64,000 nucleotides of DNA from Cyanophora paradoxa CCMP329 (lineage: Eukaryota > Plantae > Glaucophyta), in contig QPMI01000145.1 of the NCBI GenBank assembly GCA_004431415.1, positions 62,001-126,000 on the forward strand, written 5' to 3'. Both the position numbers and the translations under genes were made by a program. Position 1 is the stretch's first letter; each line of letters starts with the position of its first letter. Below, piece by piece: positions 2,711 to 45,703 of this stretch. The notes beneath the pieces are model-generated. The model did no database searches, was not told the DNA's origin, and saw nothing but the letters and a program-made list of their open reading frames with translations.

Positions 2711-2742
<32 letters not shown>

Positions 2743-21294: not shown

Positions 21295-21376
21295 AGGATC
21301 TAGGCCGGAGGGGCTTGGCTGCCTTACTCTTAGCTTGCTGTGGCTCGCGGCGGTTGGCGCTGGAGTTGCAGCTAGC

Positions 21377-23481: not shown

Positions 23482-23522
23482 CGAAACTCCGGTGCGAAGC
23501 GGGCCTTAGGTTCCCGGATCCG
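23482..23522. repeat. 41-bp fragment of the 51-bp array unit between YR copies 0 and 1
   Basis: CGAAACTCCGGTGCGAAGCGGGCCTTAGGTTCCCGGATCCG. Confidence 0.97.
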
Positions 23523-24988
23523 TTCTTCCACGCTCACGGCCGCAGCCAAACGCGTCCGCAGCGTGCCGGCCTCTGGCCGCCGCAAGGAATTCGAAGGATG
23601 AGGGGGTAAGAAGAGGACCGGCCGCCCCGCGGTGGTCCGGCCGGCAGCAAGCAGAGCCCCGTGCGGGGTACCTCATTGGGCCGCGTCCCAAGGGGCGCGC
23701 AGCGCCAAAGGAGGGGCCGCCGAGAGGGCCCCAGGGCCCGAAAAGGTAGACCACTCATTGCCTCGTGGGCGTGGTTGGGGAGGATATCTCTTCACTCCCC
23801 GTGTGCCGGGGGGTACGCATTTGCTGCCCGGGTACTCATATCGCGCCCGCAGGGGGTAAGCGATTTCGAGGGGGGTACAGCTTCTTGAGCCAACTGGAAA
23901 ATAAAGATCCGCCGTAGCAGATAAACCCCCGCATGAACAGCCAAAAGCTCGCGCTTAGGCCCGCGGAAGGCGTGAAGCCGTAGCTTCCGGGCCCTGGGAA
24001 GGTCACAACCGGAAAACAACCTCTCTCGGACGGCGGAATGAAAGGAACTAAGGTTGAAAACTAGTGATGCTGAGCAACCTAAGGAAACGCGTTTCCTACT
24101 AGGCTAAGCCTGTGAAGTAATAAACTGCTGTACATGAAAAATAGACCAGGGGACGAAATAAACCCCGTGTTGATCAGCCTAGGCCTGCAGCTAGCGCTGG
24201 CAGCCTGGCAGCCTGCCAGCCGCAGCAAACCTGACATCGAATTCGATCGAAGACCATGAAAAGTAGCCGGTCTAGGCCTAGGCCGGGGCTTGTAAATGCT
24301 CGGCCGGGCTTCGATCGAATTAAAAGCTTCGGTGATGTAGGGGATGGTGGGAGGGTCGGCAACACGCCCGGCAAATCGGGCAGTCGACGGGTACCCAACG
24401 ACTGAGCCGGTGGCCCGGGTACAGCGAGCCCGTATCGCAGATGCGGGTACCGCCGCGCCCTGGCTCGCAGATCTGGGTACGCCGTGCGTCCGATCGCGAT
24501 CCGATGATCGCGATCGCAAGCAGCAGGCGCGCGGCTCGTGCAAGCTGCTTTCGCGTTCGGCTCGGCCTTCGCTAGAAGAAAGCAGATTACTCGTACGCTT
24601 TGCTAGAGTAATCTTCCCTTCTTCCACGCTCACGGCCGCAGCCAAACGCGTCCGCAGCGTGCCGGCCTCTGGCCGCCGCAAGGAATTCGAAGGATGAGGG
24701 GGTAAGAAGAGGACCGGCCGCCCCGCGGTGGTCCGGCCGGCAGCAAGCAGAGCCCCGTGCGGGGTACCTCATTGGGCCGCGTCCCAAGGGGCGCGCAGCG
24801 CCAAAGGAGGGGCCGCCGAGAGGGCCCCAGGGCCCGAAAAGGTAGACCACTCATTGCCTCGTGGGCGTGGTTGGGGAGGATATCTCTTCACTCCCCGTGT
24901 GCCGGGGGGTACGCATTTGCTGCCCGGGTACTCATATCGCGCCCGCAGGGGGTAAGCGATTTCGAGGGGGGTACAGCTTCTTGAGCCA
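23523..24988 (-). repeat. 3' split-direct-repeat block B1-A2-spacer-B2 of copy 1
   Basis: B at 23523-23892 and 24619-24988. A at 24356-24618 matches 31736-31998. The internal junction CTTCCC|TTCTTCC reproduces the two element ends joined. Confidence 0.95.
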
Positions 24989-25114
24989 GGCAACATTTCG
25001 GGCCAGCAGCAGCAGTAATTCAGGCACGTGTACCATAGTAGAGGCCCCTCGGCACATGCAAGTTTGCAATTGCCTATATATATAAAATCAACAGGGAGGC
25101 CGGCCATAGCCAGC

Positions 25115-26644: not shown

Positions 26645-26901
26645 TCCAGGGCTGCTGGCTGCCGCTGGATGAGCCAGACGACGGGGCCCGCGCTTTGCCA
26701 GCCGTACTCCTGCAGCCAGTTGAGGAAGCGGGCCCGCAGCTGCCAGTCGACAGTGACGATAGACCCGTCCACGGGCAGGCTGCCGACGAAGGGTGGGCCG
26801 TGCCGGTTGAAGATGTGCACGTGGGGGAGCTCGGGGCGGGCGCGGCCAAGGCCAGCCGCGAGAGCCAGCGCCTCAGGCCACCATGCAGGATCGGGGCGCA
26901 C
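26125..26901 (-). CDS. Domain downstream of RNase H, at the position of the DIRS methyltransferase-like domain (degenerate)
   Basis: HVHIFNRHGPPF...EWRPLV...LPAGRGPRHLFF...PWPLWI. It is in frame with RT-RH in copy 2 (ORF 34314-36359) and one base out in copy 1. No clear NPPY/F motif. Confidence 0.45.
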   Translation of the reverse strand: MRPDPAWWPEALALAAGLGRARPELPHVHIFNRHGPPFVGSLPVDGSIVTVDWQLRARFLNWLQEYGWQSAGPVVWLIQRQPAALEWRPLVALAAARGWLLAPLPAGRGPRHLFFSAPSKGAIGLGRSPWPLWICAPAPAATLIEALAAQELPADALLPPPQRPPPLSSPPSSEAQAAVPLQDATLFLWPPRSAGPARQLQDLHPLRPLSTTGEGLPPLPRNPAPWAPAAAPRAPPPARHRLPPQQPAGRPAKRGRPS

Positions 26902-29900
26902 GTCCGCGATCCCGCGTCGGCCACCACATTATCCTTGCCGCGAACGTGCACCGCCTCCAAGGTGACTTGGGCACGGATGCAGGCGCTAAAGAGCTGCAGC
27001 GCGAGGTCCATCATCCCCTCGTTGACGCTGCCCCGCAGCGCCGCCGCCACCGCGGATGAGTTGTCTACACGGGCCACGACGTGGCTGCCAGGGCTCAGGC
27101 GCGGGAAGAGCTCCGTCGCTGCGATCAGGACGGCCCGCAGCTCACGCCAGCAGTTATCCTCGCCTGCAAGCTCTGGCGACCAGCAGCCAAAGGTGCAGCA
27201 GAAATCGCGGGAGTTGAGGGCGAGGGGATCCGCCGTGGCGTCGATGTCAAGGGCGGCGCAGAAGCCGGTGCCGGAGGCGTCTGTGAATAGGCGGAACGCC
27301 TTGGACGGGCGCCAAAGTGGGGCAGGGGGGGCGCTCGGCAGGTACTCCAGCAGCCAGGAGATGACCTGCTGCTGGAGCGGGCCCAGTGGGACGTGGGCCA
27401 TGGCCAGCTGCCCTCTAGCTCCAGCCGCGTCGGCTTGCGCGACCGCCGCTGTGAGCGGGCGGGACACCAGCGCGGCCCCAACAAAGGCATGCCGAGCCGC
27501 GTTGAGCGAGCCGGCGATCCGCTGGAGCTCGACGGCGGGGGCTGCGGTCGCGCCGCGCAGTAGCTCGAGCACCGCAAGAAGCTTGCGAAGCTTCTTCTCC
27601 GGCAGATAACACCGGCCCCGGGCCGTGTCAAGGACAAGGCCCAGGTGCTCCCGGTCCTGGGAAGGCGTGAACCTGGTCTTGTCTGAAAATGTGAGGCCCA
27701 GCAGGACGCCCAGGTACTGCAGGTGCAGCGAGACGAGGATCGCCTCTTCAAGCGTCTCGCAGATGAAGAGGCCGTCGTCGATGTATGTACAGAGGAGGAC
27801 GCCCGCGAGCACAAGCCAGTACTTCGCGAAGGCCCTCATCACCTTCGTGAAGATGTAGCACGCGGCGGCGACCCCGAAGGGGAGGGCCTGATACACATAG
27901 TAGTGCGTCACCCCTCCTATCGTCCACTTGAAGGCCAGGATGCAGGCCGTCAGCATGCAGAGTGCGATGTGGTAGTAGCCCTTTCGCAGGTCGTAGGATA
28001 CGAGCCAGCAGTTGGGATACCGACGCAGGAGCTCGATCACCTGGTCGAGCGTCTGGTAGCGGAACGAGCGAAGGTGAATGTAGCGGTTGACACGCTTGGC
28101 ATCGAGGCAGAGCCGGAATTTGTCCGCCCCTTTCTTATCCACCGTGTGAAGGGAAGACACCAGGGGGGGCTTGGGCTCGTCCGGGCCGACGCGGCGCACT
28201 AGTACTGCACCCAGCGCGACCATGCTCTTTTTCGGGCCTTCTACCTCCGAATCCACGAAGGCTTTATGCGCCGGCGAGATCGAGCATGAGGGGCGCGGTT
28301 CTTCCTCAAACGCCGGAATCTGATCCGGCGTGATCGCCTGCGAGGGGTCCCAGGGGTCGCGCGGGTCGAATCTGTCGGCGTCTCGCAGGGCGAAGCGCGC
28401 TCCGCGAGATAGGACAAGCTTCACATAGCGCGGAACGGTTGTCCCCGCCTTCCTGAACTGCCTCACCCATGCCGCGGCATGTGTTTTAAACTGGCCTGCG
28501 CGGAATGCGGCCTCGTGCGCTTTGAAATCGTATGGTGGGGGCTGCCCGTGCTCACGCACGAAGGCCCGTAGCCTCTCAAGGCGTGCTCCACCCGTTCCCG
28601 GCGGTGCCAATGCGTTGGAGTTCGATAGCGCTATCAGCTCGCCCCCCCGCATGCCCGGCAGGTCGACCTCATGGTCACAATCAGAAGTAGAAGTCAATTT
28701 TGGCCCGTAGGCCTCGACTGGCCAGGGCCCTACATGTACAGTGTCATCCATCACTGCCAGGTCCCAGGCCACACGTGTCCCGCTGAACCCCACCGAGGCC
28801 TGCGCACTACTGGCGCCGGCGCTGGGGGGAGCGGCCGCGCGGGCTGCGGGAGCGCTTGCGCTCGCGATCGCTGTCCTTGGGGGGGGTACGCTGGCGGGGG
28901 GCCGGGGGCATCCGGTTGCCGCCGCCTCCCCCCTTGCCGCCGCCGTTGTAGCCGCCGCCGCTGTTGTGGCCGCCGCCGCCGTTGTAGCCCCCGCTGCCGC
29001 CCTGGCCGCCGCCGGAGCCGACGTCGCGCCGGGAGAGGGCGGCCAGCTGCTTGGGGTCGGCTGCGAGGGGTAGAAATCAGGGGTGAAAAGGCCGTGGCCC
29101 GCAGGGTCGTTGCAGGCAAGGCCGTGGCCCGCACGTTTGATCTGGACGCCGTCGCCGTGCGCCAGCTGCGCCTCCTCCACCCCCGCGTCGGTGGCCTTCT
29201 TGACGAGGTCGCGCTTCGACTTGCCCGGGTCGGTGCCGTCAGGGCTCTTGAAGAGGCCCTCCAGCGTGATCCGGCGCCCCTCCGGCTTCCAGATGCGCGG
29301 CGGCGTCTCCTTGACCAGCCGCGTCGACTTGATGCCGGTGAGGGGCATGTCGTCGCCGATCTTGCTCATCGCCGTGCGGATGAGCTCGGCCGAGAGGTTG
29401 GTCTGGAGGAAGGCGCCGTACGACGAGTTCGTCTTCGCCATGTAGGCCTCCGCGCCCTTGTTCTTGTCGTACGGGTCCGGGGCGGGCACGCCGCGGGACG
29501 CCCCAGCGCTCACGGCGTCCGACGCCGGGTCAGCCAGGCCGCGGATCTCCAGGTTGGCCAGGTGGCCCAGGCGGCTGAGGTGGAGCGCCTTCACCAGCAA
29601 GCCCTTGGCGGCCTCCTTCTCGCCCGCCTTCCTGAGGAGCGCCACGCTCTGAAGACAGGACTGGACGAGGCCGCGGTTGGCCGCCAGCGCGCGGGCGGCG
29701 GCGTCGGTGCAAGCGTTCGCCATGTAGCCGGCGCCGGCCGCGAGCGCCGCCCGGATGATCTCCTTGACTGCGGGGTTCTGGATGTCGTTGCTGATCTCCG
29801 ATGCGCACAGGCCCGCGCGGGCCAGGCGGGCCTGGTGCAGTGAGATGTCGGTGCGCTCCTTGACGGCGGCGGGGTCGATGCCGAAGAAGCCCGCGAGGTC

Positions 29901-31778
29901 CGCCAGCTTGTCGGGATCATCCAGCGCCTCGAGGATGTTCTTCATGTCGCCCTGAGGCTCGGGGCTGCGGGAGCGGTCGCGGGAGCGGTGGGGTTCGTCG
30001 TCCAGGCGGCGCTCCAGGCGGCTAACGAAATTCTCCAGGCCCCTCTCCAGACGCCCGAGGCGGTCGCCCGTGCGATCGTGCTCGCCGTCGCGCCGGCGCT
30101 CGCGCTCCTCCTCCCGATCGTAGTCCCGCTCACGATCGTAGTCCCGCTCGCGATCGTAGTCCCGCCGGTCGCCGTTCGCGTCGTCACGATCGCCGTCACC
30201 CCAGCGCTCGCCGTCCGCGTCACGCGCGCCGCCGCCGCCGCCGCGGCCGGCGCCGCCGGCACCGCCGTTACCGGCGGGCCGGCCCGCCGCGGCCGACGTC
30301 GCCAGCGCCAGCTGCAGGGACCCCGCCATGACCGGGCCCCGCCGGGCGCCCGACGCGCCGGCGCCGGCGTTGCCAGCGTTGGCGCCGGCGCCCGCCGCCG
30401 ATGCGCCGCTCTCCAGCTGAGCCAGAAAGAGCTTCATGGCCAGTGCTTGCTGCTCGTTGTCGCCGTAGCCGACCCCAGCGTGGTCCAGTACGTCACCGAT
30501 GAGACCGCCGCTGAGGCGGGCATGGGTGCCGCCGACGACCTCGGTCGGCGTTGCCGCGCCGGCGGCCCGTGCCGCCGTGGTCGGAACCTCCACACCCACG
30601 GCGATCGCCAGCCAGCCAACAGTCAGCACCCGCCCGCTCGTCACCGCCTCCAGCACCGGCGCCATGCGCCGGTCCGCCAGGCACTTGCCGAACTGCCCGG
30701 CGAACTCGGCCGACCGGGCGTCCGCTCGGAAAGGCACCGCGAGAGACTGGAGGATCCGGAACTCGATTGAGCCTGACGGGGCCGCGGAGGCGAAGCGGGC
30801 GAACGTGACGCCGGGCGATTGGCCGAGTACGATGCGGATGACGCGATTGAACGCCGCCCGCACGGCGAGCGTTGCGTGGAGGACCGCCGCGCCGTCGTCG
30901 GGGTCCAGCCGGGTGAGCGCCGCTGCCCGGTGGAACACCAGCGACTCCGGGCCCTCGCCGACGATCCACACGTGTTCGGCGAACAGCTCCGTGGTCTCGC
31001 ACGCCGCGTCCTCCGTACCACGATCCGTCCAGGCGATGTCCAGGCGGCGGCGGCCGCCGGCATCCGGCGTGGCCATCGACACTTCGAGCACGTCTGCGCC
31101 GGCTCTCGCCGACCACGCAAAGAGCCGGCCACGGTCGTCGAACGCCGGCAGAGACATGGCGAAGCCGTCCAGAGCCGCCTCCTCCGTCGGCAGCGCCGCG
31201 GTTTCGTCGGCGCCCGCGGCCCGGCCAACCGCGACGCGCGCGATCAGCTCTGCCTTGAGGGTCACTGGCACCCGTAGGTTGAGCGCCATCACACCCAGCC
31301 GTAGCTGCTCTGCGCTCGCCAAAAAGAAACCGGATGAGCTGCTGTCCATGGAGTCCGCCAGCCCGCCAGCACTCCCCAGCCCATGCGCTAGCCCCGCCAA
31401 TCCCGCGCGACTCCGACGCTTCGTGAAGCGTCCCTCCATCGGCCATAGCCGATCCTCGCTCACGGCCGTATGCCGACGGAGCGGAGCCTCCAATGGTCGA
31501 CCACGGAGCCAGCCGCCGTGTCCGGGTAACTCAGCCCCTGTTTCTAGCGGTCTAGCGGGTCCAGCCTGCGCGTTTCCGAGCGCGCGGGCCCGGCCCGCCA
31601 GGGCCCCGGGGTTCCCCAAGGCGGAATGGGCGAAGGGGGTCACACCTTCGCTAGCGATGAGAAGTCGATCGAGGTCTCCGTTGCCTGCCATCGCGACCGT
31701 ACGCGTGCCTGACACTGCTGCTGCTGGCAATGAGATCGGCAACACGCCCGGCAAATCGGGCAGTCGACGGGTACCCAA
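26526..31778 (-). CDS. Gag-like + reverse transcriptase + RNase H polyprotein of copy 1 (likely ATG at 31349)
   Basis: 1750-aa open frame. RT: KFRLCLDAKRVN, YDLRKGYYHI, ALPFG, YIDD. RNase H: LFTDASGTG, WRELRAV, VDNSSAV, HVRGKDNVVADAGSR. The N-terminal helical region contains DYDRER repeats. Confidence 0.93.
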   Translation of the reverse strand: MGTRRLPDLPGVLPISLPAAAVSGTRTVAMAGNGDLDRLLIASEGVTPFAHSALGNPGALAGRARALGNAQAGPARPLETGAELPGHGGWLRGRPLEAPLRRHTAVSEDRLWPMEGRFTKRRSRAGLAGLAHGLGSAGGLADSMDSSSSGFFLASAEQLRLGVMALNLRVPVTLKAELIARVAVGRAAGADETAALPTEEAALDGFAMSLPAFDDRGRLFAWSARAGADVLEVSMATPDAGGRRRLDIAWTDRGTEDAACETTELFAEHVWIVGEGPESLVFHRAAALTRLDPDDGAAVLHATLAVRAAFNRVIRIVLGQSPGVTFARFASAAPSGSIEFRILQSLAVPFRADARSAEFAGQFGKCLADRRMAPVLEAVTSGRVLTVGWLAIAVGVEVPTTAARAAGAATPTEVVGGTHARLSGGLIGDVLDHAGVGYGDNEQQALAMKLFLAQLESGASAAGAGANAGNAGAGASGARRGPVMAGSLQLALATSAAAGRPAGNGGAGGAGRGGGGGARDADGERWGDGDRDDANGDRRDYDRERDYDRERDYDREEERERRRDGEHDRTGDRLGRLERGLENFVSRLERRLDDEPHRSRDRSRSPEPQGDMKNILEALDDPDKLADLAGFFGIDPAAVKERTDISLHQARLARAGLCASEISNDIQNPAVKEIIRAALAAGAGYMANACTDAAARALAANRGLVQSCLQSVALLRKAGEKEAAKGLLVKALHLSRLGHLANLEIRGLADPASDAVSAGASRGVPAPDPYDKNKGAEAYMAKTNSSYGAFLQTNLSAELIRTAMSKIGDDMPLTGIKSTRLVKETPPRIWKPEGRRITLEGLFKSPDGTDPGKSKRDLVKKATDAGVEEAQLAHGDGVQIKRAGHGLACNDPAGHGLFTPDFYPSQPTPSSWPPSPGATSAPAAARAAAGATTAAAATTAAAATTAAARGEAAATGCPRPPASVPPPRTAIASASAPAARAAAPPSAGASSAQASVGFSGTRVAWDLAVMDDTVHVGPWPVEAYGPKLTSTSDCDHEVDLPGMRGGELIALSNSNALAPPGTGGARLERLRAFVREHGQPPPYDFKAHEAAFRAGQFKTHAAAWVRQFRKAGTTVPRYVKLVLSRGARFALRDADRFDPRDPWDPSQAITPDQIPAFEEEPRPSCSISPAHKAFVDSEVEGPKKSMVALGAVLVRRVGPDEPKPPLVSSLHTVDKKGADKFRLCLDAKRVNRYIHLRSFRYQTLDQVIELLRRYPNCWLVSYDLRKGYYHIALCMLTACILAFKWTIGGVTHYYVYQALPFGVAAACYIFTKVMRAFAKYWLVLAGVLLCTYIDDGLFICETLEEAILVSLHLQYLGVLLGLTFSDKTRFTPSQDREHLGLVLDTARGRCYLPEKKLRKLLAVLELLRGATAAPAVELQRIAGSLNAARHAFVGAALVSRPLTAAVAQADAAGARGQLAMAHVPLGPLQQQVISWLLEYLPSAPPAPLWRPSKAFRLFTDASGTGFCAALDIDATADPLALNSRDFCCTFGCWSPELAGEDNCWRELRAVLIAATELFPRLSPGSHVVARVDNSSAVAAALRGSVNEGMMDLALQLFSACIRAQVTLEAVHVRGKDNVVADAGSRTCAPILHGGLRRWLSRLALAAPAPSSPTCTSSTGTAHPSSAACPWTGLSSLSTGSCGPASSTGCRSTAGKARAPSSGSSSGSQQPWSGAPWWPSQLPAAGSWPLFPPDEGPDTSSSRHRPRALSG

Positions 31779-31998
31779 CGACTGAGCCGGTGGCCCGGGT
31801 ACAGCGAGCCCGTATCGCAGATGCGGGTACCGCCGCGCCCTGGCTCGCAGATCTGGGTACGCCGTGCGTCCGATCGCGATCCGATGATCGCGATCGCAAG
31901 CAGCAGGCGCGCGGCTCGTGCAAGCTGCTTTCGCGTTCGGCTCGGCCTTCGCTAGAAGAAAGCAGATTACTCGTACGCTTTGCTAGAGTAATCTTCCC

Positions 31999-32039
31999 CG
32001 AAACTCCGGTGCGAAGCGGGCCTTAGGTTCCCGGATCCG
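31999..32039. repeat. Second, identical 41-bp array fragment between YR copies 1 and 2
   Basis: Identical to 23482-23522, including the CCTTAGG variant. Confidence 0.97.
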
Positions 32040-33628
32040 TTCTTCCACGCTCACGGCCGCAGCCAAACGCGTCCGCAGCGTGCCGGCCTCTGGCCGCCGC
32101 AAGGAATTCGAAGGATGAGGGGGTAAGAAGAGGACCGGCCGCCCCGCGGTGGTCCGGCCGGCAGCAAGCAGAGCCCCGTGCGGGGTACCTCATTGGGCCG
32201 CGTCCCAAGGGGCGCGCAGCGCCAAAGGAGGGGCCGCCGAGAGGGCCCCAGGGCCCGAAAAGGTAGACCACTCATTGCCTCGTGGGCGTGGTTGGGGAGG
32301 ATATCTCTTCACTCCCCGTGTGCCGGGGGGTACGCATTTGCTGCCCGGGTACTCATATCGCGCCCGCAGGGGGTAAGCGATTTCGAGGGGGGTACAGCTT
32401 CTTGAGCCAACTGGAAAATAAAGATCCGCCGTAGCAGATAAACCCCCGCATGAACAGCCAAAAGCTCGCGCTTAGGCCCGCGGAAGGCGTGAAGCCGTAG
32501 CTTCCGGGCCCTGGGAAGGTCACAACCGGAAAACAACCTCTCTCGGACGGCGGAATGAAAGGAACTAAGGTTGAAAACTAGTGATGCTGAGCAACCTAAG
32601 GAAACGCGTTTCCTACTAGGCTAAGCCTGTGAAGTAATAAACTGCTGTACATGAAAAATAGACCAGGGAACGAAATAAACCCCGTGTTGATCAGCCTAGG
32701 CCTGCAGCTAGCGCTGGCAGCCTGGCAGCCTGCCAGCCGCAGCAAACCTGACATCGAATTCGATCGAAGACCATGAAAAGTAGCCGGTCTAGGCCTAGGC
32801 CGGGCTTGTAAATGCTCGGCCGGGCTTCGATCGAATTAAAAGCTTCGGTGATGTAGGGGATGGTGGGAGGGTCGGCAACACGCCCGGCAAATCGGGCAGT
32901 CGACGGGTACCCAACGACTGAGCCGGTGGCCCGGGTACAGCGAGCCCGTATCGCAGATGCGGGTACCGCCGCGCCCTGGCTCGCAGATCTGGGTACGCCG
33001 TGCGTCCGATCGCGATCCGATGATCGCGATCGCAAGCAGCAGGCGCGCGGCTCGTGCAAGCTGCTTTCGCGTTCGGCTCGGCCTTCGCTAGAAGAAAGCA
33101 GATTACTCGTACGCTTTGCTAGAGTAATCTTCCCTTCTTCCACGCTCACGGCCGCAGCCAAACGCGTCCGCAGCGTGCCGGCCTCTGGCCGCCGCAAGGA
33201 ATTCGAAGGATGAGGGGGTAAGAAGAGGACCGGCCGCCCCGCGGTGGTCCGGCCGGCAGCAAGCAGAGCCCCGTGCGGGGTACCTCATTGGGCCGCGTCC
33301 CAAGGGGCGCGCAGCGCCAAAGGAGGGGCCGCCGAGAGGGCCCCAGGGCCCGAAAAGGTAGACCACTCATTGCCTCGTGGGCGTGGTTGGGGAGGATATC
33401 TCTTCACTCCCCGTGTGCCGGGGGTACGCATTTGCTGCCCGGGTACTCATATCGCGCCCGCAGGGGGTAAGCGATTTCGAGGGGGGTACAGCTTCTTGAG
33501 CCAGGCAACATTTCGGGCCAGCAGCAGCAGTAATTCAGGCACGTGTACCATAGTAGAGGCCCTCGGCACATGCAAGTTTGCAATTGCCTATATATATAAA
33601 ATCAACAGGGAGGCCGGCCATAGCCAGC

Positions 33629-34948
33629 TCAGGGCCGGCCGCCGGGCAAGGCGCCACGGAGCCTGATGTAACGCTCCATGTGCATGCACGCCTGCCCCGA
33701 CAGCTCGGTGGCGGCGTCCACATAGTGCTCGGCGGTGGTGCCGCTGTGCGACCAGCGGCCGTGCACATCAAGAACCCGCTTCTCGGCCCCACCGAGAGCG
33801 GCCCATGTGGTGCCGGTGCGCCGGAAGGAGTGGGAGGAGTAGCCGTCAGGCTGGAGACCCACCGCCTCCGCCATCCGCTTGGGAATGCAGTTGACGTAGC
33901 AGTACGACAGCTCCGCCCCCTGCTCGTTGGCGAAGAGGGGGCGGGAGCTGGCGCGCTGGGCGGCTGTGAAGCTGCTGAGGTACCGACGGAGTGCTCGGGC
34001 GGGGTCTAACAGGCCAAGCTCTGGCATGTCGGAGATCGTGACAGCCCTCGCCCCGCCGCCGCCAACCACCCCGTCGGCGAGCGGGCCGCGGCGGGGCTGG
34101 TTCGTCTTGTCCGCCGGAACTAGGAACGTGAGGCCCGGGCGCATTGCGCCGCGGTCCGCCGCCTCGACGACGTCACGGAGACGTAGGCGGCGGCAGGCGT
34201 CGTCGTAGCGGAACCAGCCGAAGATCATCGTCAGCACCAGCGCAAGGTCGCGCAGCTGCACTGCTGTCCCCCGACGCAGGAAGTCGTCGGACGTTATCCA
34301 GCGCCGAACCTCCTCAGGGCGGAACGTGCGGGCGGTCTCTGCCGCCCGCCGCGCCGTCATCTCGATGCCGCGGAGGTCGCGGTCGGAGAAGGAGCCTGGG
34401 GGTAGTGGGGTGCCCGCCGCCGCAAGGCCGCACCGCACCGCCGCCAGGTACTTGGTGAGTGTGCTCCACTGCTTGCCCTCCAGCGCCAAGTTTGCCACGT
34501 ACAGCCGCACGTACTCTGCACCGTGAGGCGGACAGTCGATCTCCGTGCAGAAGGTGATGAACCGGCGGTAGATGCGGGCGTACTCGGCCTGGGTCCCGCT
34601 GCTGTGAGCGTAACCTTCCCAGGCATGCGCCGCCGCCCTCAGCTCGGCCTGCCGCGCTTGGCGGGCCGGCCCGCCGGCTGCTGGGGCGGAAGCCGGTGCC
34701 GCGCGGGGGGAGGGGCCCGTGGCGCCGCGGCCGCGCCCACGGGGCGGGGTTCCGGGGAGCGGGGGGAGCCCTTCCCCGTAGTTGAGAGGGGCGAAGAGGG
34801 TGCAGGTCCTGCAGCTGCCGGGCTGGGCCAGCGGACCGCGGTGGCCACAGGAACAGCGTTGCGTCCTGCAGGGGCACCGCGGCCTGCGCCTCCGAGGAGG
34901 GCGGCGAAGAGAGCGGAGGGGGCCGCTGCGGCGGGGGTAGGAGGGCAT
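33629..34948 (-). CDS. Tyrosine recombinase of copy 2
   Basis: Same R-K-HxxR-W-Y motifs as copy 1. Two substitutions seen in the core (AESV to AEYV, VNGIP to VNCIP). Confidence 0.93.
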   Translation of the reverse strand: MPSYPRRSGPLRSLRRPPRRRRPRCPCRTQRCSCGHRGPLAQPGSCRTCTLFAPLNYGEGLPPLPGTPPRGRGRGATGPSPRAAPASAPAAGGPARQARQAELRAAAHAWEGYAHSSGTQAEYARIYRRFITFCTEIDCPPHGAEYVRLYVANLALEGKQWSTLTKYLAAVRCGLAAAGTPLPPGSFSDRDLRGIEMTARRAAETARTFRPEEVRRWITSDDFLRRGTAVQLRDLALVLTMIFGWFRYDDACRRLRLRDVVEAADRGAMRPGLTFLVPADKTNQPRRGPLADGVVGGGGARAVTISDMPELGLLDPARALRRYLSSFTAAQRASSRPLFANEQGAELSYCYVNCIPKRMAEAVGLQPDGYSSHSFRRTGTTWAALGGAEKRVLDVHGRWSHSGTTAEHYVDAATELSGQACMHMERYIRLRGALPGGRP

Positions 34949-36270
34949 CCGCGGGCAGCTCCTGCGCGGCCAGAGCCTCGATCAGCGTCGCTGCTGGGGC
35001 AGGAGCGCATATCCAGAGGGGCCAAGGGGAACGCCCTAGCCCGATAGCGCCCTTGGACGGTGCCGAGAAGAAGAGGTGTCGGGGCCCTCGTCCGGCGGGA
35101 AGAGGGGCCAGGAGCCAGCCGCGGGCAGCTGCGAGGGCCACCAGGGGGCGCCACTCCAGGGCTGCTGGCTGCCGCTGGATGAGCCAGACGACGGGGCCCG
35201 CGCTTTGCCAGCCGTACTCCTGCAGCCAGTTGAGGAAGCGGGCCCGCAGCTGCCAGTCGACAGTGACGATAGACCCGTCCACGGGCAGGCTGCCGACGAA
35301 GGGTGGGCCGTGCCGGTTGAAGATGTGCACGTGGGGGAGCTCGGGGCGGGCGCGGCCAAGGGCCAGCCGCGAGAGCCAGCGCCTCAGGCCACCATGCAGG
35401 ATCGGGGCGCACGTCCGCGATCCCGCGTCGGCCACCACATTATCCTTGCCGCGAACGTGCACCGCCTCCAAGGTGACTTGGGCACGGATGCAGGCGCTAA
35501 AGAGCTGCAGCGCGAGGTCCATCATCCCCTCGTTGACGCTGCCCCGCAGCGCCGCCGCCACCGCGGATGAGTTGTCTACACGGGCCACGACGTGGCTGCC
35601 AGGGCTCAGGCGCGGGAAGAGCTCCGTCGCTGCGATCAGGACGGCCCGCAGCTCACGCCAGCAGTTATCCTCGCCTGCAAGCTCTGGCGACCAGCAGCCA
35701 AAGGTGCAGCAGAAATCGCGGGAGTTGAGGGCGAGGGGATCCGCCGTGGCGTCGATGTCAAGGGCGGCGCAGAAGCCGGTGCCGGAGGCGTCTGTGAATA
35801 GGCGGAACGCCTTGGACGGGCGCCAAAGTGGGGCAGGGGGGGTGCTCGGCAGGTACTCCAGCAGCCAGGAGATGACCTGCTGCTGGAGCGGGCCCAGTGG
35901 GACGTGGGCCATGGCCAGCTGCCCTCTAGCTCCAGCCGCGTCGGCTTGCGCGACCGCCGCTGTGAGCGGGCGGGACACCAGCGCGGCCCCAACAAAGGCA
36001 TGCCGAGCCGCGTTGAGCGAGCCGGCGATCCGCTGGAGCTCGACGGCGGGGGCTGCGGTCGCGCCGCGCAGTAGCTCGAGCACCGCAAGAAGCTTGCGAA
36101 GCTTCTTCTCCGGCAGATAACACCGGCCCCGGGCCGTGTCAAGGACAAGGCCCAGGTGCTCCCGGTCCTGGGAAGGCGTGAACCTGGTCTTGTCTGAAAA
36201 TGTGAGGCCCAGCAGGACGCCCAGGTACTGCAGGTGCAGCGAGACGAGGATCGCCTCTTCAAGCGTCTCG
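34800..36270 (-). pseudogene. 3' part of copy 2 pol (RT thumb, RNase H, downstream domain)
   Basis: Resumes at ETLEEAILVSLHLQ directly after the DNA-transposon insertion. Contains LFTDAS and ADAGSR. Confidence 0.9.
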
Positions 36271-36636
36271 CGTTTCAAGTCAAACCCCCCCCCCCCCGGC
36301 GCCGGGGGCGGGGGGTGAAGCTGGGCGGAAATCAAGTTGAAAGCAGCTCGAGCGCACAATTGTGATTGGTGGGGACGCTTTTCAAGTTCGATAGTTCGAG
36401 TCGAAGGGCGGGATGTGTGTACGGGAAAGAGGGCGGACTCGACCGTTGCGGAGGACCGTTAGTTCGGCTACTAGTAACGGGCCGAGCCACTAATTATAGC
36501 GGCAAGAGCTGCTGGCTAGGGGCAGTCTCCAAGGCTAGCAAGCCGCGCGATGGGGAGGGGGAAGGGCTAGAGAGCCGTTCGCGCCATCGATCTTGGCGGC
36601 AGCTAGCAGCAGCAGCCTGCGGCCGCCGCGACGCCC

Positions 36637-38802
36637 ATGGGGCGCAAGCTCTTCTCCAACTCCGGCCAGCGCTTCCGGAAGGAAGACGACTGGAAGCTGC
36701 CGGACGACCCGAAGCTGCCGGACATGGACTATCTGGAGACGTATTTGCCCGGGGCGCGCGACAGCAAGGGCCGTTTCCTCCTCGTAGGGGAATATGCCCT
36801 CATTAGGACCAGCTGGGACCTCCAGCCGACCGACAACTTCGCCAACTGGGTCTTCAACCGCCAGGACGTCCGTTCCGGCGAGCCGATCCTCGTTCGCCTG
36901 GAGGAAGTCAGCAAGCCTCGCTCAGACGGTCACATTGCGTGCCTCTTCCGGCATTTCGTGAAGGCCGGCGACAAGATGCTCTCGGACAAGGCGCGGGACA
37001 TGATGGCCCGTTCCACCAAGCACCCCGACAAGGAGGTCATGGTCGTCATCGGTCGGTTCCAACTGATCGGATTTGAGGTTCGCAGCGCGCGCGATCGCCC
37101 CGCGCTGGCCCCTCGGCTCACGCCGCGCAGATTCTGAAGAAGGTCTGCGTCTGGTCTGGGGAGTCGTTCAACAAGTTCACCACCATCACTAAGAACGACT
37201 ACTGCTGCCGGTTTGTCGGCGCGCTGTACGGGCGCCGGTGCTTCGTCAGCGGATGGGAGAACTACCCGAAGATGAAGATCCGGAAGCCCAACGCCAAGGC
37301 GATGACTCGCTTCATCGACCTGACGTACAGCAAGGACCCGAGGGACCTCGTGGATCCCAAGGAGCAGAAGTACCTGCTGGACGAGGCGAACAACCAGCTC
37401 CGGAGCCGCAGGAGCCGCCAGCCGAGGATCGTCCAAGCGCGGCTCATGGTCTACGGGCCGTCTCACGCGGTGCGCACGGCCTCGTGCTCGCTCTCCGTCG
37501 GCTGACCCGCCTCCAGCGCCGGACGCTCTCGAACCTGCCGGCGAACGGAGTGCCGACCGCGGTTATCGCGCAGCCGTGGCGTCGCGTGCTGAAGACCAAC
37601 AAGGAGTGCGATGGTGCGTGCGTCTTCCTCTTCCCGCCGTCGCGCGCCTTATTTGCGGCGCCGCAGATGTGCTCGGGCCGTCCGGCCTTCGGCAGGTCCA
37701 CTCGAAGAAGCGCGAGGACGGCCCGAACGGCAAGAAGGTCTTCGTGCCAATCTTGAAGAAGGAGGCGTACGGCCCGCGCGTCAAGCAGAACACGGAGACG
37801 GCCCACCTCGACGTCCTCGACACGGAGTACGAGGGCCGTGCGTTCGCCTCACCCGGCACGCGTGCGCAGCGCTGCTGATGTGCTCGCAGACCCCGCGGAG
37901 CTGGCGCTCATCCAGCCGGCAAAGAAGAAGCAGCGGCTCGCCCTGACGCTGTCGGCGCCCCAGTACACGGAGGACTGGGTCGGCCATCGCAACGGCCAGC
38001 ACGCGCAGGGCCCCGTCGGGGTTCCCACCGCCATCCCCGTCGATCCGCCCGTCCCGCGGCCACCGCCCCGTCCGCGCCGTGCCCGCGCCGCCCAGCAGCA
38101 GCAGCCGCCCGCCCCGGAGCCTCCCTCCGTGCCGGTGGCTGCCCCCGCCGCCGCCCCGGAGCCTCCCGCCGCGCCGGCGCTCCCCGCCGCGCCGACGCTC
38201 GCTGCCCCGCCGCCGCCCCGGAGCCTCCCTCCGTGCCGGTGGCTGCCCCCGCCGCCGCCCGGAGCCTCCCGCCGCGCCGGCGCTCCCCGCCGCGCCGACG
38301 CTCGCTGCCCCGCCGCCGCCCCGGAGCCTCCCGCCGCGCCGACGCTCGCTGCCCCGCCGCCGCCCCGGAGCCTCCCGCCGCGCCGGCGCTCCCCGCCGCG
38401 CCGACGCTCGCTGCCCCGCCGCCGCCCGGAGCCTCCCGCCGCGCCGGCGCTCCCCGCCGCGCCGACGCTCGCTGCCCCGCCGCCGCCCCGGAGCCTCCCG
38501 CCGCGCCGGCGCTCCCCGCCCCCGCCGCCGCCCCGGAGCCTCCCGCCGCGCCGGCGCTCCCCGCCCCCGCCGCCGAGCCCCCCACCACGCCCTCAACGGC
38601 TGCCGCCGCAGCTTCTCCCTCCCAGCGTCGCAGCCCCCGCTTCGCTCCCCCTCCGGCACCAGCTGCAACCATGCGCGCTTAAAGATTGATATCTGCATAT
38701 TTACACGTTTCTAACATCCGCCCCTGCAGGGCGACAGACGAAGCTCTCGAGGTGCTCGACGCGGCCAAGAATGCCAAGAAGCGCAAGCGAGCCCAGGCGT
38801 AG
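36637..38802 (+). CDS. BAH-domain protein with Pro/Ala-rich tail and C-terminal basic NLS-like motif (spliced, ~5 introns)
   Basis: LLVGEYALIR...EPILVRLEEV...ACLFRHFVKAGD...PDKEVMVV...IGFE/ILKKVCVWSGESF...NDYCCRF follows the BAH consensus order. The last exon ATDEALEVLDAAKNAKKRKRAQA* ends at 38802. Confidence 0.75.
38100..38580 (+). repeat. GC-rich coding minisatellite (PEPPAAPALPAAPTLAAP-type units)
   Basis: Repeated CCGGAGCCTCCCGCCGCGCCGGCGCTCCCCGCCGCGCCGACGCTCGCTGCCCC units and sub-units. Confidence 0.9.
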
Positions 38803-38842
38803 GACTAGGTGAGCGCGTCGCCGCGATTCGCGTCGCCGTCGC

Positions 38843-40550
38843 CTAATCGTCGCCGTCCACCAGGTCGTTGTCCTCCTCCATCTGAACGTCGGACTCCGAA
38901 TCGGAATCCGACTCGTCTGACTCGGACTCCGATGCTGCGGCGGGCTCCAGGGCGGGCTCCGGGGCGGGCTCCGGGGCGCGCTCCGGGGCGCGCTTCGGGG
39001 CGGGCTTCGAGGCGGCTTTCCGGCGCGGCCGCCGGCGCGCCTTCGTCACGGGGGCGGGGACGAGCTGGGCGCCCGCGGGATAGGGGCGCGTGGGCGGCTG
39101 GGCGGCCTGGGGGACGGCGAGCTGCTCGTGCTCATCGTACTGACTCCGCACAGGCCACGGCTGCAGCGGCCCCTCCGGCCAGAGCTTGACGTCCACCGTT
39201 GGGCACTCCACCTCCTTCGCCTTCCCCGTCTCGTCCTGCTTCCTCGGCGGCTTCAGGTGCGCTGCCTTCTCCACCGTGTTGCCCGCCACGTACGCCTTCA
39301 TGACGCGCGTCATCTCCTGAAGCTGAAACCAAAGGCGGCGGCGCTCGTGCTGCAGCATCTGGAGGAGCATGGTGACGTTCGCGGCCCGTCCGCCACCGAG
39401 GGACGTGACAGCGTAGCGCAGGCGACGGAGGTAGCCCATGTACGCCTCGGTGACCTCCGAGCTGTTCCGGGCCGGCGACCGCGTGGCATCGAAGAGCGCC
39501 CAGAACGGAAGGTGCGCCAGCGTCGCGTGCATGTAGCGCGTGAAGGCGCCCTCCAACGGGAAGTGCAGCTCCATCAACTCGCGGATCCGGACGGCGGCGG
39601 TGGCGGCGGCGGCCCGCATCTGGCTGCTGGGCCACATGGTGGTCTCGTACGTGTACAAGCACTGCCGCCACTTCCAGATCTCGCGGAGGCCGCTGACCTG
39701 CGCCGACCAGGTCCCCGGCGGGCCGTGCACGATGCTGAAGACCTCGTCGATGAAGCCCGAGTCGTCGGCAAGGATGCGCTTCGCGGTCGTCGCGTTGATC
39801 TTCTGGAACGGAGTTGCGTACCCGTCCGCGTCGCGCTCGAGCTTGAATCCCCGCGCGAACTTGTCCCTGATCAGAAGCTCGATCTTGTCGTGCGCCTCCT
39901 TCATGGCCAAGCCCGACGTCTTCAGGAAGGTGGCGGCGAAGCCACCGACGGTCCAGCTCTTCGTGCCGTGGAGGACATCCAGCTGCACCTGCCGGGGTAC
40001 GTGTCAGCGCCACATACACGAGGCTACAGGATTGGGCCGGGCGGGGCGATGGCGAGGGAGCGGCGGGGCCGCGCCGGGCGGGGCGCGCACCATGTCAACG
40101 AGGGCCTCGAGTGCCTCCAAGGCGCCGACGGAATCCGTGTAGGGCATCGGGTCGGCGGAGTTGGTGAAAATGCTGAAGGCACGGTCCTTCCGTTTTTGCT
40201 TGTCCATCTCGGCGCGAATCTGAGCGCGTGCGGCGCGCGCGCCGCGGGGCGACATGGGCCGCAGCGGAGCGTCCTCCTCCTCCGCATCCCGCTTCCGCTT
40301 CCCTGCAGCCTTCGGCGACGAAGCCTCGGCGTCGCAGTCGTTGAAGGCCAGCTTCCGCGGGGCCAGGTCGCCCTCGCCGGAGCTGCGCGGCCTGCTGCCC
40401 GCTGGGCTCGCTGGGCTGGCTCCCGCGATGGGGCTCTTGCGCGCTCTCTCTTGCGCTGGGCTGCGCCGCTGCGGACTCCCGATGAACATTCTCTTTATCG
40501 AGCCGAAACGGATGTTGGGGCCCGCGGCCGGGCTGCTGCCGCCCACGCGG

Positions 40551-40588
<38 letters not shown>

Positions 40589-40759
40589 GGCGCGCCTGAA
40601 CTTGGCAGGGTCCGCCGTGAAAGGCTGCGCCTTCTTCTTACGCGCTTCTATCTCCTCCTTTGTGCGGCCGGCCTCGCTGATCGCGTGCATCTTTGCTGCC
40701 ATCGAGTGGGAGTAATACTCGATGTACTCCACGAGGTCCGCATCGTCTGCTGGTGCCAT
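38843..40759 (-). CDS. RAG1/Transib-like transposase derivative (C-terminal half of catalytic core), two exons
   Basis: GCCGCCATGG start at 40759 and a GT-AG intron at ~39989-40090. Motifs QLDVLHG, KINATTAKRIL, TRYMHATLAHLP and SSEVTEAYMGYLRRLR parallel RAG1 SIDALHC, MNGNFARKLM, TNYFHKTLAHVP and ASEGNESGNKLFRRFR (RAG1 motifs recalled from memory). Acidic tail. Confidence 0.78.
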
Positions 40760-41098
40760 GGCGGCAGCGCCTAGCTAGCCAGGCCAAGCCTACTTGTTTG
40801 GGTACAACAGACGGGAAGCCGCCTGACTAGCCGACGAGAACTTGTCTAGCAGCGGCTAAGCAGCCGCCCAAAGTAGTACCGGAACACGCGTGACTGGTAC
40901 CCGAAAAGTACCAGAAAAGTTGAGGACACTTGGATTTTTTTAGAGGGGAACTTGACACTTCCGGCCAAGTTCCGGGCGAGAGTTTGGCGAACTCGCCAGA
41001 TTGCCCGACCAATGGCGCAACTTCAAATCTGCGGGGGCTACAGGAACTTCCGGCTGTGTTCAGGCGGGCGCCAGAAGGGACTTTGACTTGTTACGTCG

Positions 41099-44000
41099 CA
41101 GATGAAGAGGCCGTCGTCGATGTATGTACAGAGGAGGACGCCCGCGAGCACAAGCCAGTACTTCGCGAAGGCCCTCATCACCTTCGTGAAGATGTAGCAC
41201 GCGGCGGCGACCCCGAAGGGGAGGGCCTGATACACATAGTAGTGCGTCACCCCTCCTATCGTCCACTTGAAGGCCAGGATGCAGGCCGTCAGCATGCAGA
41301 GTGCGATGTGGTAGTAGCCCTTTCGCAGGTCGTAGGATACGAGCCAGCAGTTGGGATACCGACGCAGGAGCTCGATCACCTGGTCGAGCGTCTGGTAGCG
41401 GAACGAGCGAAGGTGAATGTAGCGGTTGACACGCTTGGCATCGAGGCAGAGCCGGAATTTGTCCGCCCCTTTCTTATCCACCGTGTGAAGGGAAGACACC
41501 AGGGGGGGCTTGGGCTCGTCCGGGCCGACGCGGCGCACTGCACCCAGCGCGACCATGCTCTTTTTCGGGCCTTCTACCTCCGAATCCACGAAGGCTTTAT
41601 GCGCCGGCGAGATCGAGCATGAGGGGCGCGGTTCTTCCTCAAACGCCGGAATCTGATCCGGCGTGATCGCCTGCGAGGGGTCCCAGGGGTCGCGCGGGTC
41701 GAATCTGTCGGCGTCTCGCAGGGCGAAGCGCGCTCCGCGAGATAGGACAAGCTTCACATAGCGCGGAACGGTTGTCCCCGCCTTCCTGAACTGCCTCACC
41801 CATGCCGCGGCATGTGTTTTAAACTGGCCTGCGCGGAATGCGGCCTCGTGCGCTTTGAAATCGTATGGTGGGGGCTGCCCGTGCTCACGCACGAAGGCCC
41901 GTAGCCTCTCAAGGCGTGCTCCACCCGTTCCCGGCGGTGCCAATGCGTTGGAGTTCGATAGCGCTATCAGCTCGCCCCCCCGCATGCCCGGCAGGTCGAC
42001 CTCATGGTCACAATCAGAAGTAGAAGTCAATTTTGGCCCGTAGGCCTCGACTGGCCAGGGCCCTACATGTACAGTGTCATCCATCACTGCCAGGTCCCAG
42101 GCCACACGTGTCCCGCTGAACCCCACCGAGGCCTGCGCACTACTGGCGCCGGCGCTGGGGGGAGCGGCCGCGCGGGCTGCGGGAGCGCTTGCGCTCGCGA
42201 TCGCTGTCCTTGGGGGGGGTACGCTGGCGGGGGGCCGGGGGCATCCGGTTGCCGCCGCCTCCCCCCTTGCCGCCGCCGTTGTAGCCGCCGCCGCTGTTGT
42301 GGCCGCCGCCGCCGTTGTAGCCCCGCTGCCGCCCTGGCCGCCGCCGGAGCCGACGTCGCGCCGGGAGAGGGCGGCCAGCTGCTTGGGGTCGGCTGCGAGG
42401 GTAGAAATCAGGGGTGAAAAGGCCGTGGCCCGCAGGGTCGTTGCAGGCAAGGCCGTGGCCCGCACGTTTGATCTGGACGCCGTCGCCGTGCGCCAGCTGC
42501 GCCTCCTCCACCCCGCGTCGGTGGCCTTCTTGACGAGGTCGCGCTTCGACTTGCCCGGGTCGGTGCCGTCAGGGCTCTTGAAGAGGCCCTCCAGCGTGAT
42601 CCGGCGCCCCTCCGGCTTCCAGATGCGCGGCGGCGTCTCCTTGACCAGCCGCGTCGACTTGATGCCGGTGAGGGCATGTCGTCGCCGATCTTGCTCATCG
42701 CCGTGCGGATGAGCTCGGCCGAGAGGTTGGTCTGGAGGAAGGCGCCGTACGACGAGTTCGTCTTCGCCATGTAGGCCTCCGCGCCTTGTTCTTGTCGTAC
42801 GGGTCCGGGGCGGGCACGCCGCGGGACGCCCAGCGCTCACGGCGTCCGACGCCGGGTCAGCCAGGCCGCGGATCTCCAGGTTGGCCAGGTGGCCCAGGCG
42901 GCTGAGGTGGAGCGCCTTCACCAGCAAGCCCTTGGCGGCCTCCTTCTCGCCCGCCTTCCTGAGGAGCGCCACGCTCTGAAGACAGGACTGGACGAGGCCG
43001 CGGTTGGCCGCCAGCGCGCGGGCGGCGGCGTCGGTGCAAGCGTTCGCCATGTAGCCGGCGCCGGCCGCGAGCGCCGCCCGGATGATCTCCTTGACTGCGG
43101 GGTTCTGGATGTCGTTGCTGATCTCCGATGCGCACAGGCCCGCGCGGGCCAGGCGGGCCTGGTGCAGTGAGATGTCGGTGCGCTCCTTGACGGCGGCGGG
43201 GTCGATGCCGAAGAAGCCCGCGAGGTCCGCCAGCTTGTCGGGATCATCCAGCGCCTCGAGGATGTTCTTCATGTCGCCCTGAGGCTCGGGGCTGCGGGAG
43301 CGGTCGCGGGAGCGGTGGGGTTCGTCGTCCAGGCGGCGCTCCAGGCGGCTAACGAAATTCTCCAGGCCCCTCTCCAGACGCCCGAGGCGGTCGCCCGTGC
43401 GATCGTGCTCGCCGTCGCGCCGGCGCTCGCGCTCCTCCTCCCGATCGTAGTCCCGCTCACGATCGTAGTCCCGCTCGCGATCGTAGTCCCGCCGGTCGCC
43501 GTTCGCGTCGTCACGATCGCCGTCACCCCAGCGCTCGCCGTCCGCGTCACGCGCGCCGCCGCCGCCGCCGCGGCCGGCGCCGCCGGCACCGCCGTTACCG
43601 GCGGGCCGGCCCGCCGCGGCCGACGTCGCCAGCGCCAGCTGCAGGGACCCCGCCATGACCGGGCCCCGCCGGGCGCCCGACGCGCCGGCGCCGGCGTTGC
43701 CAGCGTTGGCGCCGGCGCCCGCCGCCGATGCGCCGCTCTCCAGCTGAGCCAGAAAGAGCTTCATGGCCAGTGCTTGCTGCTCGTTGTCGCCGTAGCCGAC
43801 CCCAGCGTGGTCCAGTACGTCACCGATGAGACCGCCGCTGAGGCGGGCATGGGTGCCGCCGACGACCTCGGTCGGCGTTGCCGCGCCGGCGGCCCGTGCC
43901 GCCGTGGTCGGAACCTCCACACCCACGGCGATCGCCAGCCAGCCAACAGTCAGCACCCGCCCGCTCGTCACCGCCTCCAGCACCGGCGCCATGCGCCGGT

Positions 44001-44675
44001 CCGCCAGGCACTTGCCGAACTGCCCGGCGAACTCGGCCGACCGGGCGTCCGCTCGGAAAGGCACCGCGAGAGACTGGAGGATCCGGAACTCGATTGAGCC
44101 TGACGGGGCCGCGGAGGCGAAGCGGGCGAACGTGACGCCGGGCGATTGGCCGAGTACGATGCGGATGACGCGATTGAACGCCGCCCGCACGGCGAGCGTT
44201 GCGTGGAGGACCGCCGCGCCGTCGTCGGGGTCCAGCCGGGTGAGCGCCGCTGCCCGGTGGAACACCAGCGACTCCGGGCCCTCGCCGACGATCCACACGT
44301 GTTCGGCGAACAGCTCCGTGGTCTCGCACGCCGCGTCCTCCGTACCACGATCCGTCCAGGCGATGTCCAGGCGGCGGCGGCCGCCGGCATCCGGCGTGGC
44401 CATCGACACTTCGAGCACGTCTGCGCCGGCTCTCGCCGACCACGCAAAGAGCCGGCCACGGTCGTCGAACGCCGGCAGAGACATGGCGAAGCCGTCCAGA
44501 GCCGCCTCCTCCGTCGGCAGCGCCGCGGTTTCGTCGGCGCCCGCGGCCCGGCCAACCGCGACGCGCGCGATCAGCTCTGCCTTGAGGGTCACTGGCACCC
44601 GTAGGTTGAGCGCCATCACACCCAGCCGTAGCTGCTCTGCGCTCGCCAAAAGAAACCGGATGAGCTGCTGTCCAT
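41099..44675 (-). pseudogene. 5' part of copy 2 gag-RT, cut just after YIDDGLFIC
   Basis: Near-identical to copy 1 apart from scattered 1-bp homopolymer deletions and a 6-bp indel (copy 1 has an extra AGTACT near 28201). Confidence 0.9.
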
Positions 44676-45322
44676 GGAGTCCGCCAGCCCGCCAGCACTC
44701 CCCAGCCCATGCGCTAGCCCCGCCAATCCCGCGCGACTCCGACGCTTCGTGAAGCGTCCCTCCATCGGCCATAGCCGATCCTCGCTCACGGCCGTATGCC
44801 GACGGAGCGGAGCCTCCAATGGTCGACCACGGAGCCAGCCGCCGTGTCCGGGTAACTCAGCCCCTGTTTCTAGCGGTCTAGCGGGTCCAGCCTGCGCGTT
44901 TCCGAGCGCGCGGGCCCGGCCCGCCAGGGCCCGGGGTTCCCAAGGCGGAATGGGCGAAGGGGGTCACACCTTCGCTAGCGATGAGAAGTCGATCGAGGTC
45001 TCCGTTGCCTGCCATCGCGACCGTACGCGTGCCTGACACTGCTGCTGCTGGCAATGAGATCGGCAACACGCCCGGCAAATCGGGCAGTCGACGGGTACCC
45101 AACGACTGAGCCGGTGGCCCGGGTACAGCGAGCCCGTATCGCAGATGCGGGTACCGCCGCGCCCTGGCTCGCAGATCTGGGTACGCCGTGCGTCCGATCG
45201 CGATCCGATGATCGCGATCGCAAGCAGCAGGCGCGCGGCTCGTGCAAGCTGCTTTCGCGTTCGGCTCGGCCTTCGCTAGAAGAAAGCAGATTACTCGTAC
45301 GCTTTGCTAGAGTAATCTTCCC

Positions 45323-45497
45323 GGAGCTTAAGCGAAACAGCGTGTGCGAAGCGGGCCTTAAGTTCCCGGATCCGGGAGCTTAAGCGAAACTGCGTGTGCG
45401 AAGCGGGTCTTAAGTTCCCGGATCCGGGAGCTTAAGCGAAACTTCGTGTGCGAAGCGGGTCTTAAGTTCCCGGATCCGGGAGCTTAAGCGAAACTCC
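45323..45497. repeat. Right part of the palindromic tandem array (~3.5 units of 52 bp)
   Basis: Same CTTAAGTTCCCGGATCCGGGAGCTTAAG core. The linker varies (AGCGTGT, TGCGTGT, TTCGTGT). Confidence 0.97.
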
Positions 45498-45703
45498 GTC
45501 GAAACTCTCTGTGAGCTGATATCGATCATGACTTCAAGCCGGCTCATTCACTCGCAGGCGAGACGTAACAAACCCGGCTTCAAGCCGGCCCCGCAGCTCA
45601 CTCGCAGAAGCGTGGCGCCGCGCGCGCGGGCCAAGCCTCTCGCCGCATCAGTCCGTCGCAGCCAGATAGCACACCACAGCGGAAGCGGTTCGGGGAGGCA
45701 CGA

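Follow-up and report, generated by a model that had tools for sequence, protein, structure and literature searches.

We analysed a window of 64,000 nucleotides from the glaucophyte Cyanophora paradoxa CCMP329 (contig QPMI01000145.1, positions 62,001 to 126,000 of the forward strand; positions below count from the first letter of the window). At 36271-41095, the window holds a 4,825-bp DNA transposon with two spliced genes, a RAG1-like gene and a partner gene with a BAH-like motif pattern. The element lies inside the second of two tandem retrotransposon copies. The genome of C. paradoxa is haploid, comprises 99.9 Mb with a GC content of 67.6%, and has many short introns (PMC6704402).

The borders of the element were determined by aligning the two host copies with each other. 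Copy 1 (22886-32039) matched copy 2 over 31403-36271 and again over 41096-45374, and 36271-41095 was left unmatched. The empty site in copy 1 contains a single TCG (27757-27759), and the filled site in copy 2 has TCG on either side. The target-site duplication (TSD) is thus 3 bp long; a 4-bp TSD reading TCGC is formally possible, but the symmetry of the ends is broken under it. The terminal inverted repeats are 14 bp long, agree at 12 of the 14 positions (2 mismatches) and begin with CG (ends CGT-TT/AA-CAAGTCAAA). For a fixed junction, the chance of such an agreement is about 8e-6. In addition, the word AAGT(T/C) occurred 11 times in the two non-coding end regions, compared with 1.7 times in shuffled sequence; repeated subterminal words are also carried by CACTA elements. 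The first-pass annotation of this DNA had described the same insertion, inverted ends and TCG duplication, and the exact empty site bears it out. Its claim of recent movement also holds, because the host copies differ by only 8 substitutions, with 34 gap positions, over 9.1 kb. We conclude that the element is a recently inserted transposon of the cut-and-paste type.

Contigs from two DNA runs and two RNA runs were compared with the window. The empty-site junction was also present in the DNA runs, at a depth of about 210, and no contig bridging a filled junction was found among the DNA-run matches listed. Precise excision was considered as the source of the empty site and rejected, since the reads contain several empty copies. 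The CAAGTCAAA words at 1139 and 5925 were rejected as related ends, as they face outward and one of them lies in an apparent host exon. At 36413-36428, both DNA runs differ from the window by a 10-bp insertion and two substitutions, which reflects either an assembly error or a strain difference. The features of the locus are as follows.

31403-45374, minus strand: host element, the second tandem copy of a tyrosine-recombinase retrotransposon, its reverse transcriptase frame broken just after YIDD
36268-36270: left TSD copy, TCG, corresponding to the single TCG of the empty copy at 27757-27759
36271-36284, plus strand: left terminal inverted repeat, 14 bp, starting with CG (copy alignment and end comparison)
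36271-36636, plus strand: left end region with three CAAGT/AAGTY words and a C-run/G-run hairpin at 36286-36315; presumed promoter of the plus-strand gene
36637-37077, plus strand: partner exon 1, 147 codons, with the first three quarters of the BAH-like pattern as judged by eye; no family or fold match
37131-37469, plus strand: partner exon 2, 113 codons, in which the BAH-like pattern ends; an RNA contig covers part of the exon
37517-37613, plus strand: partner exon 3, predicted
37667-37837, plus strand: partner exon 4, donor confirmed by an RNA contig
37890-38672, plus strand: partner exon 5, acceptor confirmed by RNA, 3' end approximate, with a Pro/Ala tandem repeat
38730-38802, plus strand: predicted last partner exon, with a basic tail resembling a nuclear localization signal and a stop codon; requires a GC-AG intron
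38843-39988, minus strand: RAG1-like exon 2, 381 codons, with DxLH, NATTAKR, His-x4-His, an E962-type helix and an acidic tail; corresponds to about RAG1 residue 790 onward
39989-40090, minus strand: predicted 102-bp GT-AG intron with a CTGAC branch site and an in-frame stop; not seen in RNA
40091-40759, minus strand: RAG1-like exon 1, 223 codons, low-complexity and basic, without catalytic Asp motifs or CxxC
40760-41095, minus strand: right end region, containing eight AAGTY words and the presumed promoter of the minus-strand gene
41082-41095, minus strand: right terminal inverted repeat, 14 bp (copy alignment)
41096-41098: right TSD copy, TCG (copy alignment)

The two genes are convergent, with stop codons at 38800-38802 (plus) and 38843-38845 (minus), 40 bp apart, so the tail-to-tail arrangement was correctly recognized in the first pass. 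All exons of both genes showed coding bias, with a GC content of 0.78-0.96 at third codon positions (GC3) versus 0.36-0.63 at second positions (GC2). A convergent gene layout also occurs in MuDR. No related loci were found in metagenome, viral and prokaryotic contigs.

We made several observations on the RAG1-like gene. First, the motifs DVLH, NATTAKR, TRYMHATLAH and SEVTE are present in the RAG1 order, as had been noted, though all four fall after the second catalytic Asp of RAG1. Second, exon 2 was 44-47% identical to nine C. paradoxa gene models over their C-terminal 230-280 amino acids. These relatives (EukProt EP00741 models P0001-P0009) are multi-copy, nine models on nine contigs, and C. 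paradoxa gene models were the sole homologues recovered among 1.8 billion representatives. Third, P0002 displays the full RAG1 order of D418, D522, C535/C538, DxLH, H757/H762 and E784; the corresponding residues of mouse RAG1 are D600, D708, C727/C730, H937/H942 and E962 (PMC4914335). The TRYMHATLAH motif of the window aligns to H757/H762 of P0002, the H(3-4)H motif. Finally, the C(2)C motif is present in P0002, P0003, P0007 and P0008 and absent from the window copy, which we therefore file, from its motifs, as a derivative and not an intact member of the CMCT clade.

Structure-based comparisons pointed in the same direction. In a Foldseek search with the exon 2 model, RAG1 chains occupied ranks 1-3 at E values of 0.5-0.8, each individually sub-threshold. 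In VIA-align, RAG1 chains were the leading globular matches, and residues 5-117 of the model superposed on RAG1 790-894 (Z 5.3, root-mean-square deviation 3.5 over 93 residues), again sub-threshold. ESM Atlas features matched RAG1_ZnH2 clusters at 0.93 and 0.91. The fold evidence is consistent but weak, because the single-sequence model has a predicted local distance difference test score (pLDDT) of 48. Pfam gave no match on the exons scanned or on the full-length relatives (best, DUF1280 on P0002, E 0.25), sequence searches of the PDB gave none to the RAG1-like gene, and word-based homologue searches with the window exons returned nothing. There was no significant sequence match to any described CMCT lineage. 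The label "RAG1-fold" appears justified and "RAG1 family" is not, because the motifs that carry the case are common to the whole CMCT clade (PMC12730594). Judged from its sequence features, the lineage would be placed as an orphan branch within CMCT (RAG1/Transib/EnSpm) with CG ends and a 3-bp TSD.

Of the core, the RAG1-like gene contains the C-terminal half alone (DxLH, His-x4-His and the last catalytic Glu). In the full-length relatives, similarity to the window begins at residue 603, and their residues 400-602, which contain both Asp and the CxxC, scored no better than shuffled sequence in each of the element's six frames. An N-terminal RNase H half was not found anywhere in the window. 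The equivalents of D600 and D708 and the CxxC pair are missing, and only the Glu motif of the D-D-E triad is left. An apparent homology of exon 1 to the N-terminus of the relatives was rejected as composition-driven (P 0.08). Catalytic exons hidden within the element were rejected by the six-frame test, and just 1.1 kb lies upstream of exon 2. An assembly error was rejected as the cause of the truncation. A 2,040-bp contig covers 38542-40541, including the junction of exons 1 and 2, with zero differences in the two DNA runs. Its depth of 61 is similar to that of other single-copy contigs and corresponds to about one copy of the element. Because a single contig spans the junction without a difference at single-copy depth, the truncation is genuine. 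The half-protein would be unable to cut DNA alone, because none of the three acidic residues is dispensable in RAG1 (10.1101/698332), and this copy, as its sequence stands, would not move itself. The earlier view of a working RAG1-family transposon is thus not supported for this copy. At 102 bp, the intron of the RAG1-like gene is twice as long as the element's other introns, and a fusion of two introns is our guess at its origin.

From these observations, the element is probably a non-autonomous, internally deleted member of a Cyanophora RAG1-fold (CMCT-clade) cut-and-paste lineage. In the mechanism that we propose, a full-length RAG1-fold transposase would have bound the ends, excised the element and inserted it with a 3-nt stagger. 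The acting enzyme may have been encoded by the element itself, until part of its gene was deleted in place, or supplied in trans by a related element, and the internal deletion could have preceded or followed the insertion. The remaining half-protein would be a remnant without cutting activity, and the partner would be an accessory gene with a nuclear product, passed on from the parent family.

In favour of this reading, no RNA contig covered the core of the RAG1-like gene in the two RNA runs, whereas the partner is spliced, although such contig data cannot prove that the gene is silent. Other points weigh against it. Both RAG1-like exons are open and joined in frame across a canonical intron, an outcome that a random deletion would not always yield. 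No parent with at least 85% DNA identity over exon 2 was present in the DNA runs examined. The open frames (GC3 0.83-0.93), the in-frame splice and the lack of a near-identical full-length parent in the DNA runs speak for a rival explanation, a stable non-autonomous sub-lineage in which selection maintains the half-transposase, either in a regulatory role or as a portion of a split enzyme that is completed in trans, and in which the partner serves as a cofactor. A diverged sibling, which has exons 2-4 of the partner as well as some of the right end, also fits this explanation. So do unnamed eukaryotic clusters of 230-288 amino acids (Chlorophyta, Chordata, Mucoromycota) in the ESM Atlas, which resemble the half-transposase by features but may be either fragments or stand-alone ZnH2-type proteins. 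However, the His pair and the last Glu are intact without their Cys and Asp partners, as they would be after a recent deletion. That no transcript was seen and no N-terminal RNase H half was found in the window also counts against selection on the half-transposase, and we regard it as unlikely.

The partner gene was assembled from six predicted exons with canonical splice sites, except that the last one was reached through a GC-AG intron. In one RNA contig, 37837 was joined to 37890, with the intron 37838-37889 removed. The RNA nature of the run that carries this contig is a guess, and the clean removal of a GT-AG intron supports it. Two further RNA contigs over exon 2 and exon 4 showed no mismatch, at low depth. 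The splicing proposed for both genes was therefore seen for this partner intron and not for the 102-bp intron of the RAG1-like gene. The Pro/Ala repeat of exon 5 contains frame shifts in the assembly, which are likely homopolymer errors. A diverged second copy was found in the DNA runs at single-copy depth, covering 37340-37960 (partner exons 2-4) and 40777-41000 (part of the right end), and it represents a sibling element elsewhere in the genome. Its partner exons 2-4 are alignable and its three introns differ. The capture of a single-copy host gene by this copy only, which the first-pass annotation had raised against itself, was rejected, since the sibling exists. Because the exons remained alignable while the introns differed, the partner gene is not a one-off capture. 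We conclude that it is real, expressed and spliced.

We considered whether the partner could be a captured or orphan passenger that is not a BAH protein and has no role in transposition, its tail-to-tail position at most giving antisense RNA that damps the transposase gene. As 40 bp separate the two stop codons, the 3' ends of the genes probably overlap, and end-to-end genes with shared untranslated regions are common in this genome (PMC6704402). The blank Pfam, atlas, homologue, PDB-sequence and fold searches with the partner agree with such a passenger, but they are weak evidence, because each exon was searched separately although an intron divides the domain, and the exon 1 model had a pLDDT of 42. 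The sibling's exons, alignable despite three replaced introns, argue instead for a conserved, element-borne gene. A passenger is, in our judgement, quite unlikely.

The first pass had found that the partner follows a BAH consensus, and by eye this stands on the order of its motifs, namely VGEYALI, EPILVRLEEV, a strand containing F, E-VMV, ILKKVCV and DYCCRF. A BAH domain was returned by none of the searches listed above; in the ESM Atlas, partner exon 1 had no features and the structure search was blank. No kelch or PHD match was found on the partner exons scanned, and six exons ending in a Pro/Ala repeat would leave little room for a six-bladed propeller. At the positions that we take, by eye and from the BAH consensus, to be those of a methyl-lysine cage, the partner motifs read EPIL and RHFV, with no Tyr or Trp, and the aromatic cage is apparently absent. 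In BAH domains that read H3K27me3, this cage is formed by a Trp and two Tyr (PMC13068663). Going by its motifs, the chances that the partner has a degenerate BAH fold appear evenly balanced, and it is rather doubtful that it reads a methyl-lysine mark. It would more likely bind nucleosomes or proteins and thereby keep the element expressed. An anti-silencing role is plausible, because repeats are CpG-methylated in C. paradoxa (PMC12344493).

The same methylation would make a counter-silencing or targeting factor useful to an autonomous RAG1-family transposon whose BAH partner, like RAG2, steers insertion to repressive chromatin. The convergent genes, the probable RAG1-type fold of exon 2 and the BAH-like motif order, as seen by eye, also suit this model. 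However, two of the three catalytic residues and the CxxC are missing, which refutes autonomy for this copy, and the BAH match was obtained by no method. The Trp/Tyr cage was not seen at the matching motifs, as aligned by eye. A single nested insertion is no proof of targeting and is weak evidence for it, because repeats make up 29% of the genome (PMC6704402) and selection tolerates such sites. Overall, we find this model highly improbable. Distinctly improbable, too, is a history in which a glaucophyte RAG1-fold lineage independently recruited a BAH-fold chromatin adaptor as its second gene, and a non-autonomous branch kept that gene together with half of the transposase, its zinc-His domain and Glu helix being under selection to regulate the full enzyme or to complement it in trans.

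The host of the element belongs to a young tandem retrotransposon pair at 22886-45374, about 9.15 kb each, with reverse transcriptase, integrase and split internal repeats of 263, 374 and 637 bp (Pfam RVT_1, E 2e-12; phage integrase, E 4e-6). The insertion split the reverse transcriptase frame of copy 2 directly after its YIDD motif. The DNA runs contain several further copies and diverged relatives of this retrotransposon. A 51-52-bp minisatellite with palindromic arms occurs at the right end of the pair (45304-45504) and at 9698-9890, the latter occurrence being followed by 380 bp that match the internal repeat of the retrotransposon. Elsewhere in the window, the G-rich region 10220-22000, with a poly-T run at 10221 and a reverse transcriptase domain at 16125-18197 (E 7e-22), is probably a fragmented element on the minus strand that resembles a long interspersed nuclear element; a weak Ulp1-type protease match at 10532-11821 (E 0.006) was below the cut-off. 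Two intron-rich host genes lie head to head at 2400-9090, by eye metacaspase-like (minus) and kelch/BTB-like (plus). A kinesin motor domain fragment occupies 55712-56569 (E 1.5e-20), and a tandem array of about 1 kb, made of 27-bp units with Pro/Ser-rich frames, occupies 59208-60175.

We compared the element with known systems. The full-length C. paradoxa family, compared as protein models, shares the C-terminal motifs and acidic tail of exon 2 and has a complete D-D-E and CxxC, whereas the element has nothing homologous to the family's first 602 residues. The CMCT clade comprises EnSpm/CACTA, Mirage, Chapaev, Transib, Plavaka, ESTA as well as Lanisha; the element resembles it in the H(4)H before the last catalytic Glu, in a TSD of 3 bp, within the clade's 2-5 bp, and in the C(2)C of its full-length relatives (PMC12730594). 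It differs in its CG..CG termini, compared with the CA..TG of most members, and in the loss from this copy of C(2)C and both Asp. The element shares RAG1-type core motifs with Transib, but canonical Transib elements have a 5-bp TSD, C-initial (CAC) ends resembling recombination signal sequences and one gene (PMC1131882, PMC7204232), and neither the ends nor the TSD agree. In the Nozomi/Hayabusa Transib lineage, TSDs of 3 bp occur, as do first bases that deviate from the canonical ones and non-autonomous derivatives of reduced length (10.64898/2026.08.26.747230). The likeness to ProtoRAG/RAGL elements that had been proposed is confined to a RAG1-fold gene facing a second gene. The element has CG instead of CAC ends, a 3-bp instead of a 5-bp TSD, no detected kelch/PHD RAG2-like gene and no intact active site (PMC7204232), and is no ProtoRAG. 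RAG1-like elements were published earlier from an alga (Aureococcus AanRAGL, PMC9435367). Transposons with chromatin or anti-silencing genes include VANDAL with VANC (PMC10398659), TET/JBP-bearing CMCT elements (PMC12730594) and PHD and chromo fusions (10.1101/2021.11.30.470311). The element resembles them in that an accessory gene, with BAH as a candidate label, lies within a DNA transposon, and the repeats of the host genome are methylated. We came across no publication in which a transposon carries a BAH gene.

The element is most likely a defective copy from a branch of the RAG1/Transib/EnSpm clade that occurs in algae, has unusual CG ends and is apparently undescribed. To that branch the locus adds a diverged version with a halved transposase and a retained partner, so the partner travels even with a crippled transposase. 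On how V(D)J recombination arose, the element gives no direct information. Should the partner prove to be a factor with a BAH fold and to bind chromatin or the transposase, it would provide an independent case of a RAG1-fold enzyme with a chromatin adaptor, comparable to RAG2, and the material for that comparison would be the full-length copies and not this one.

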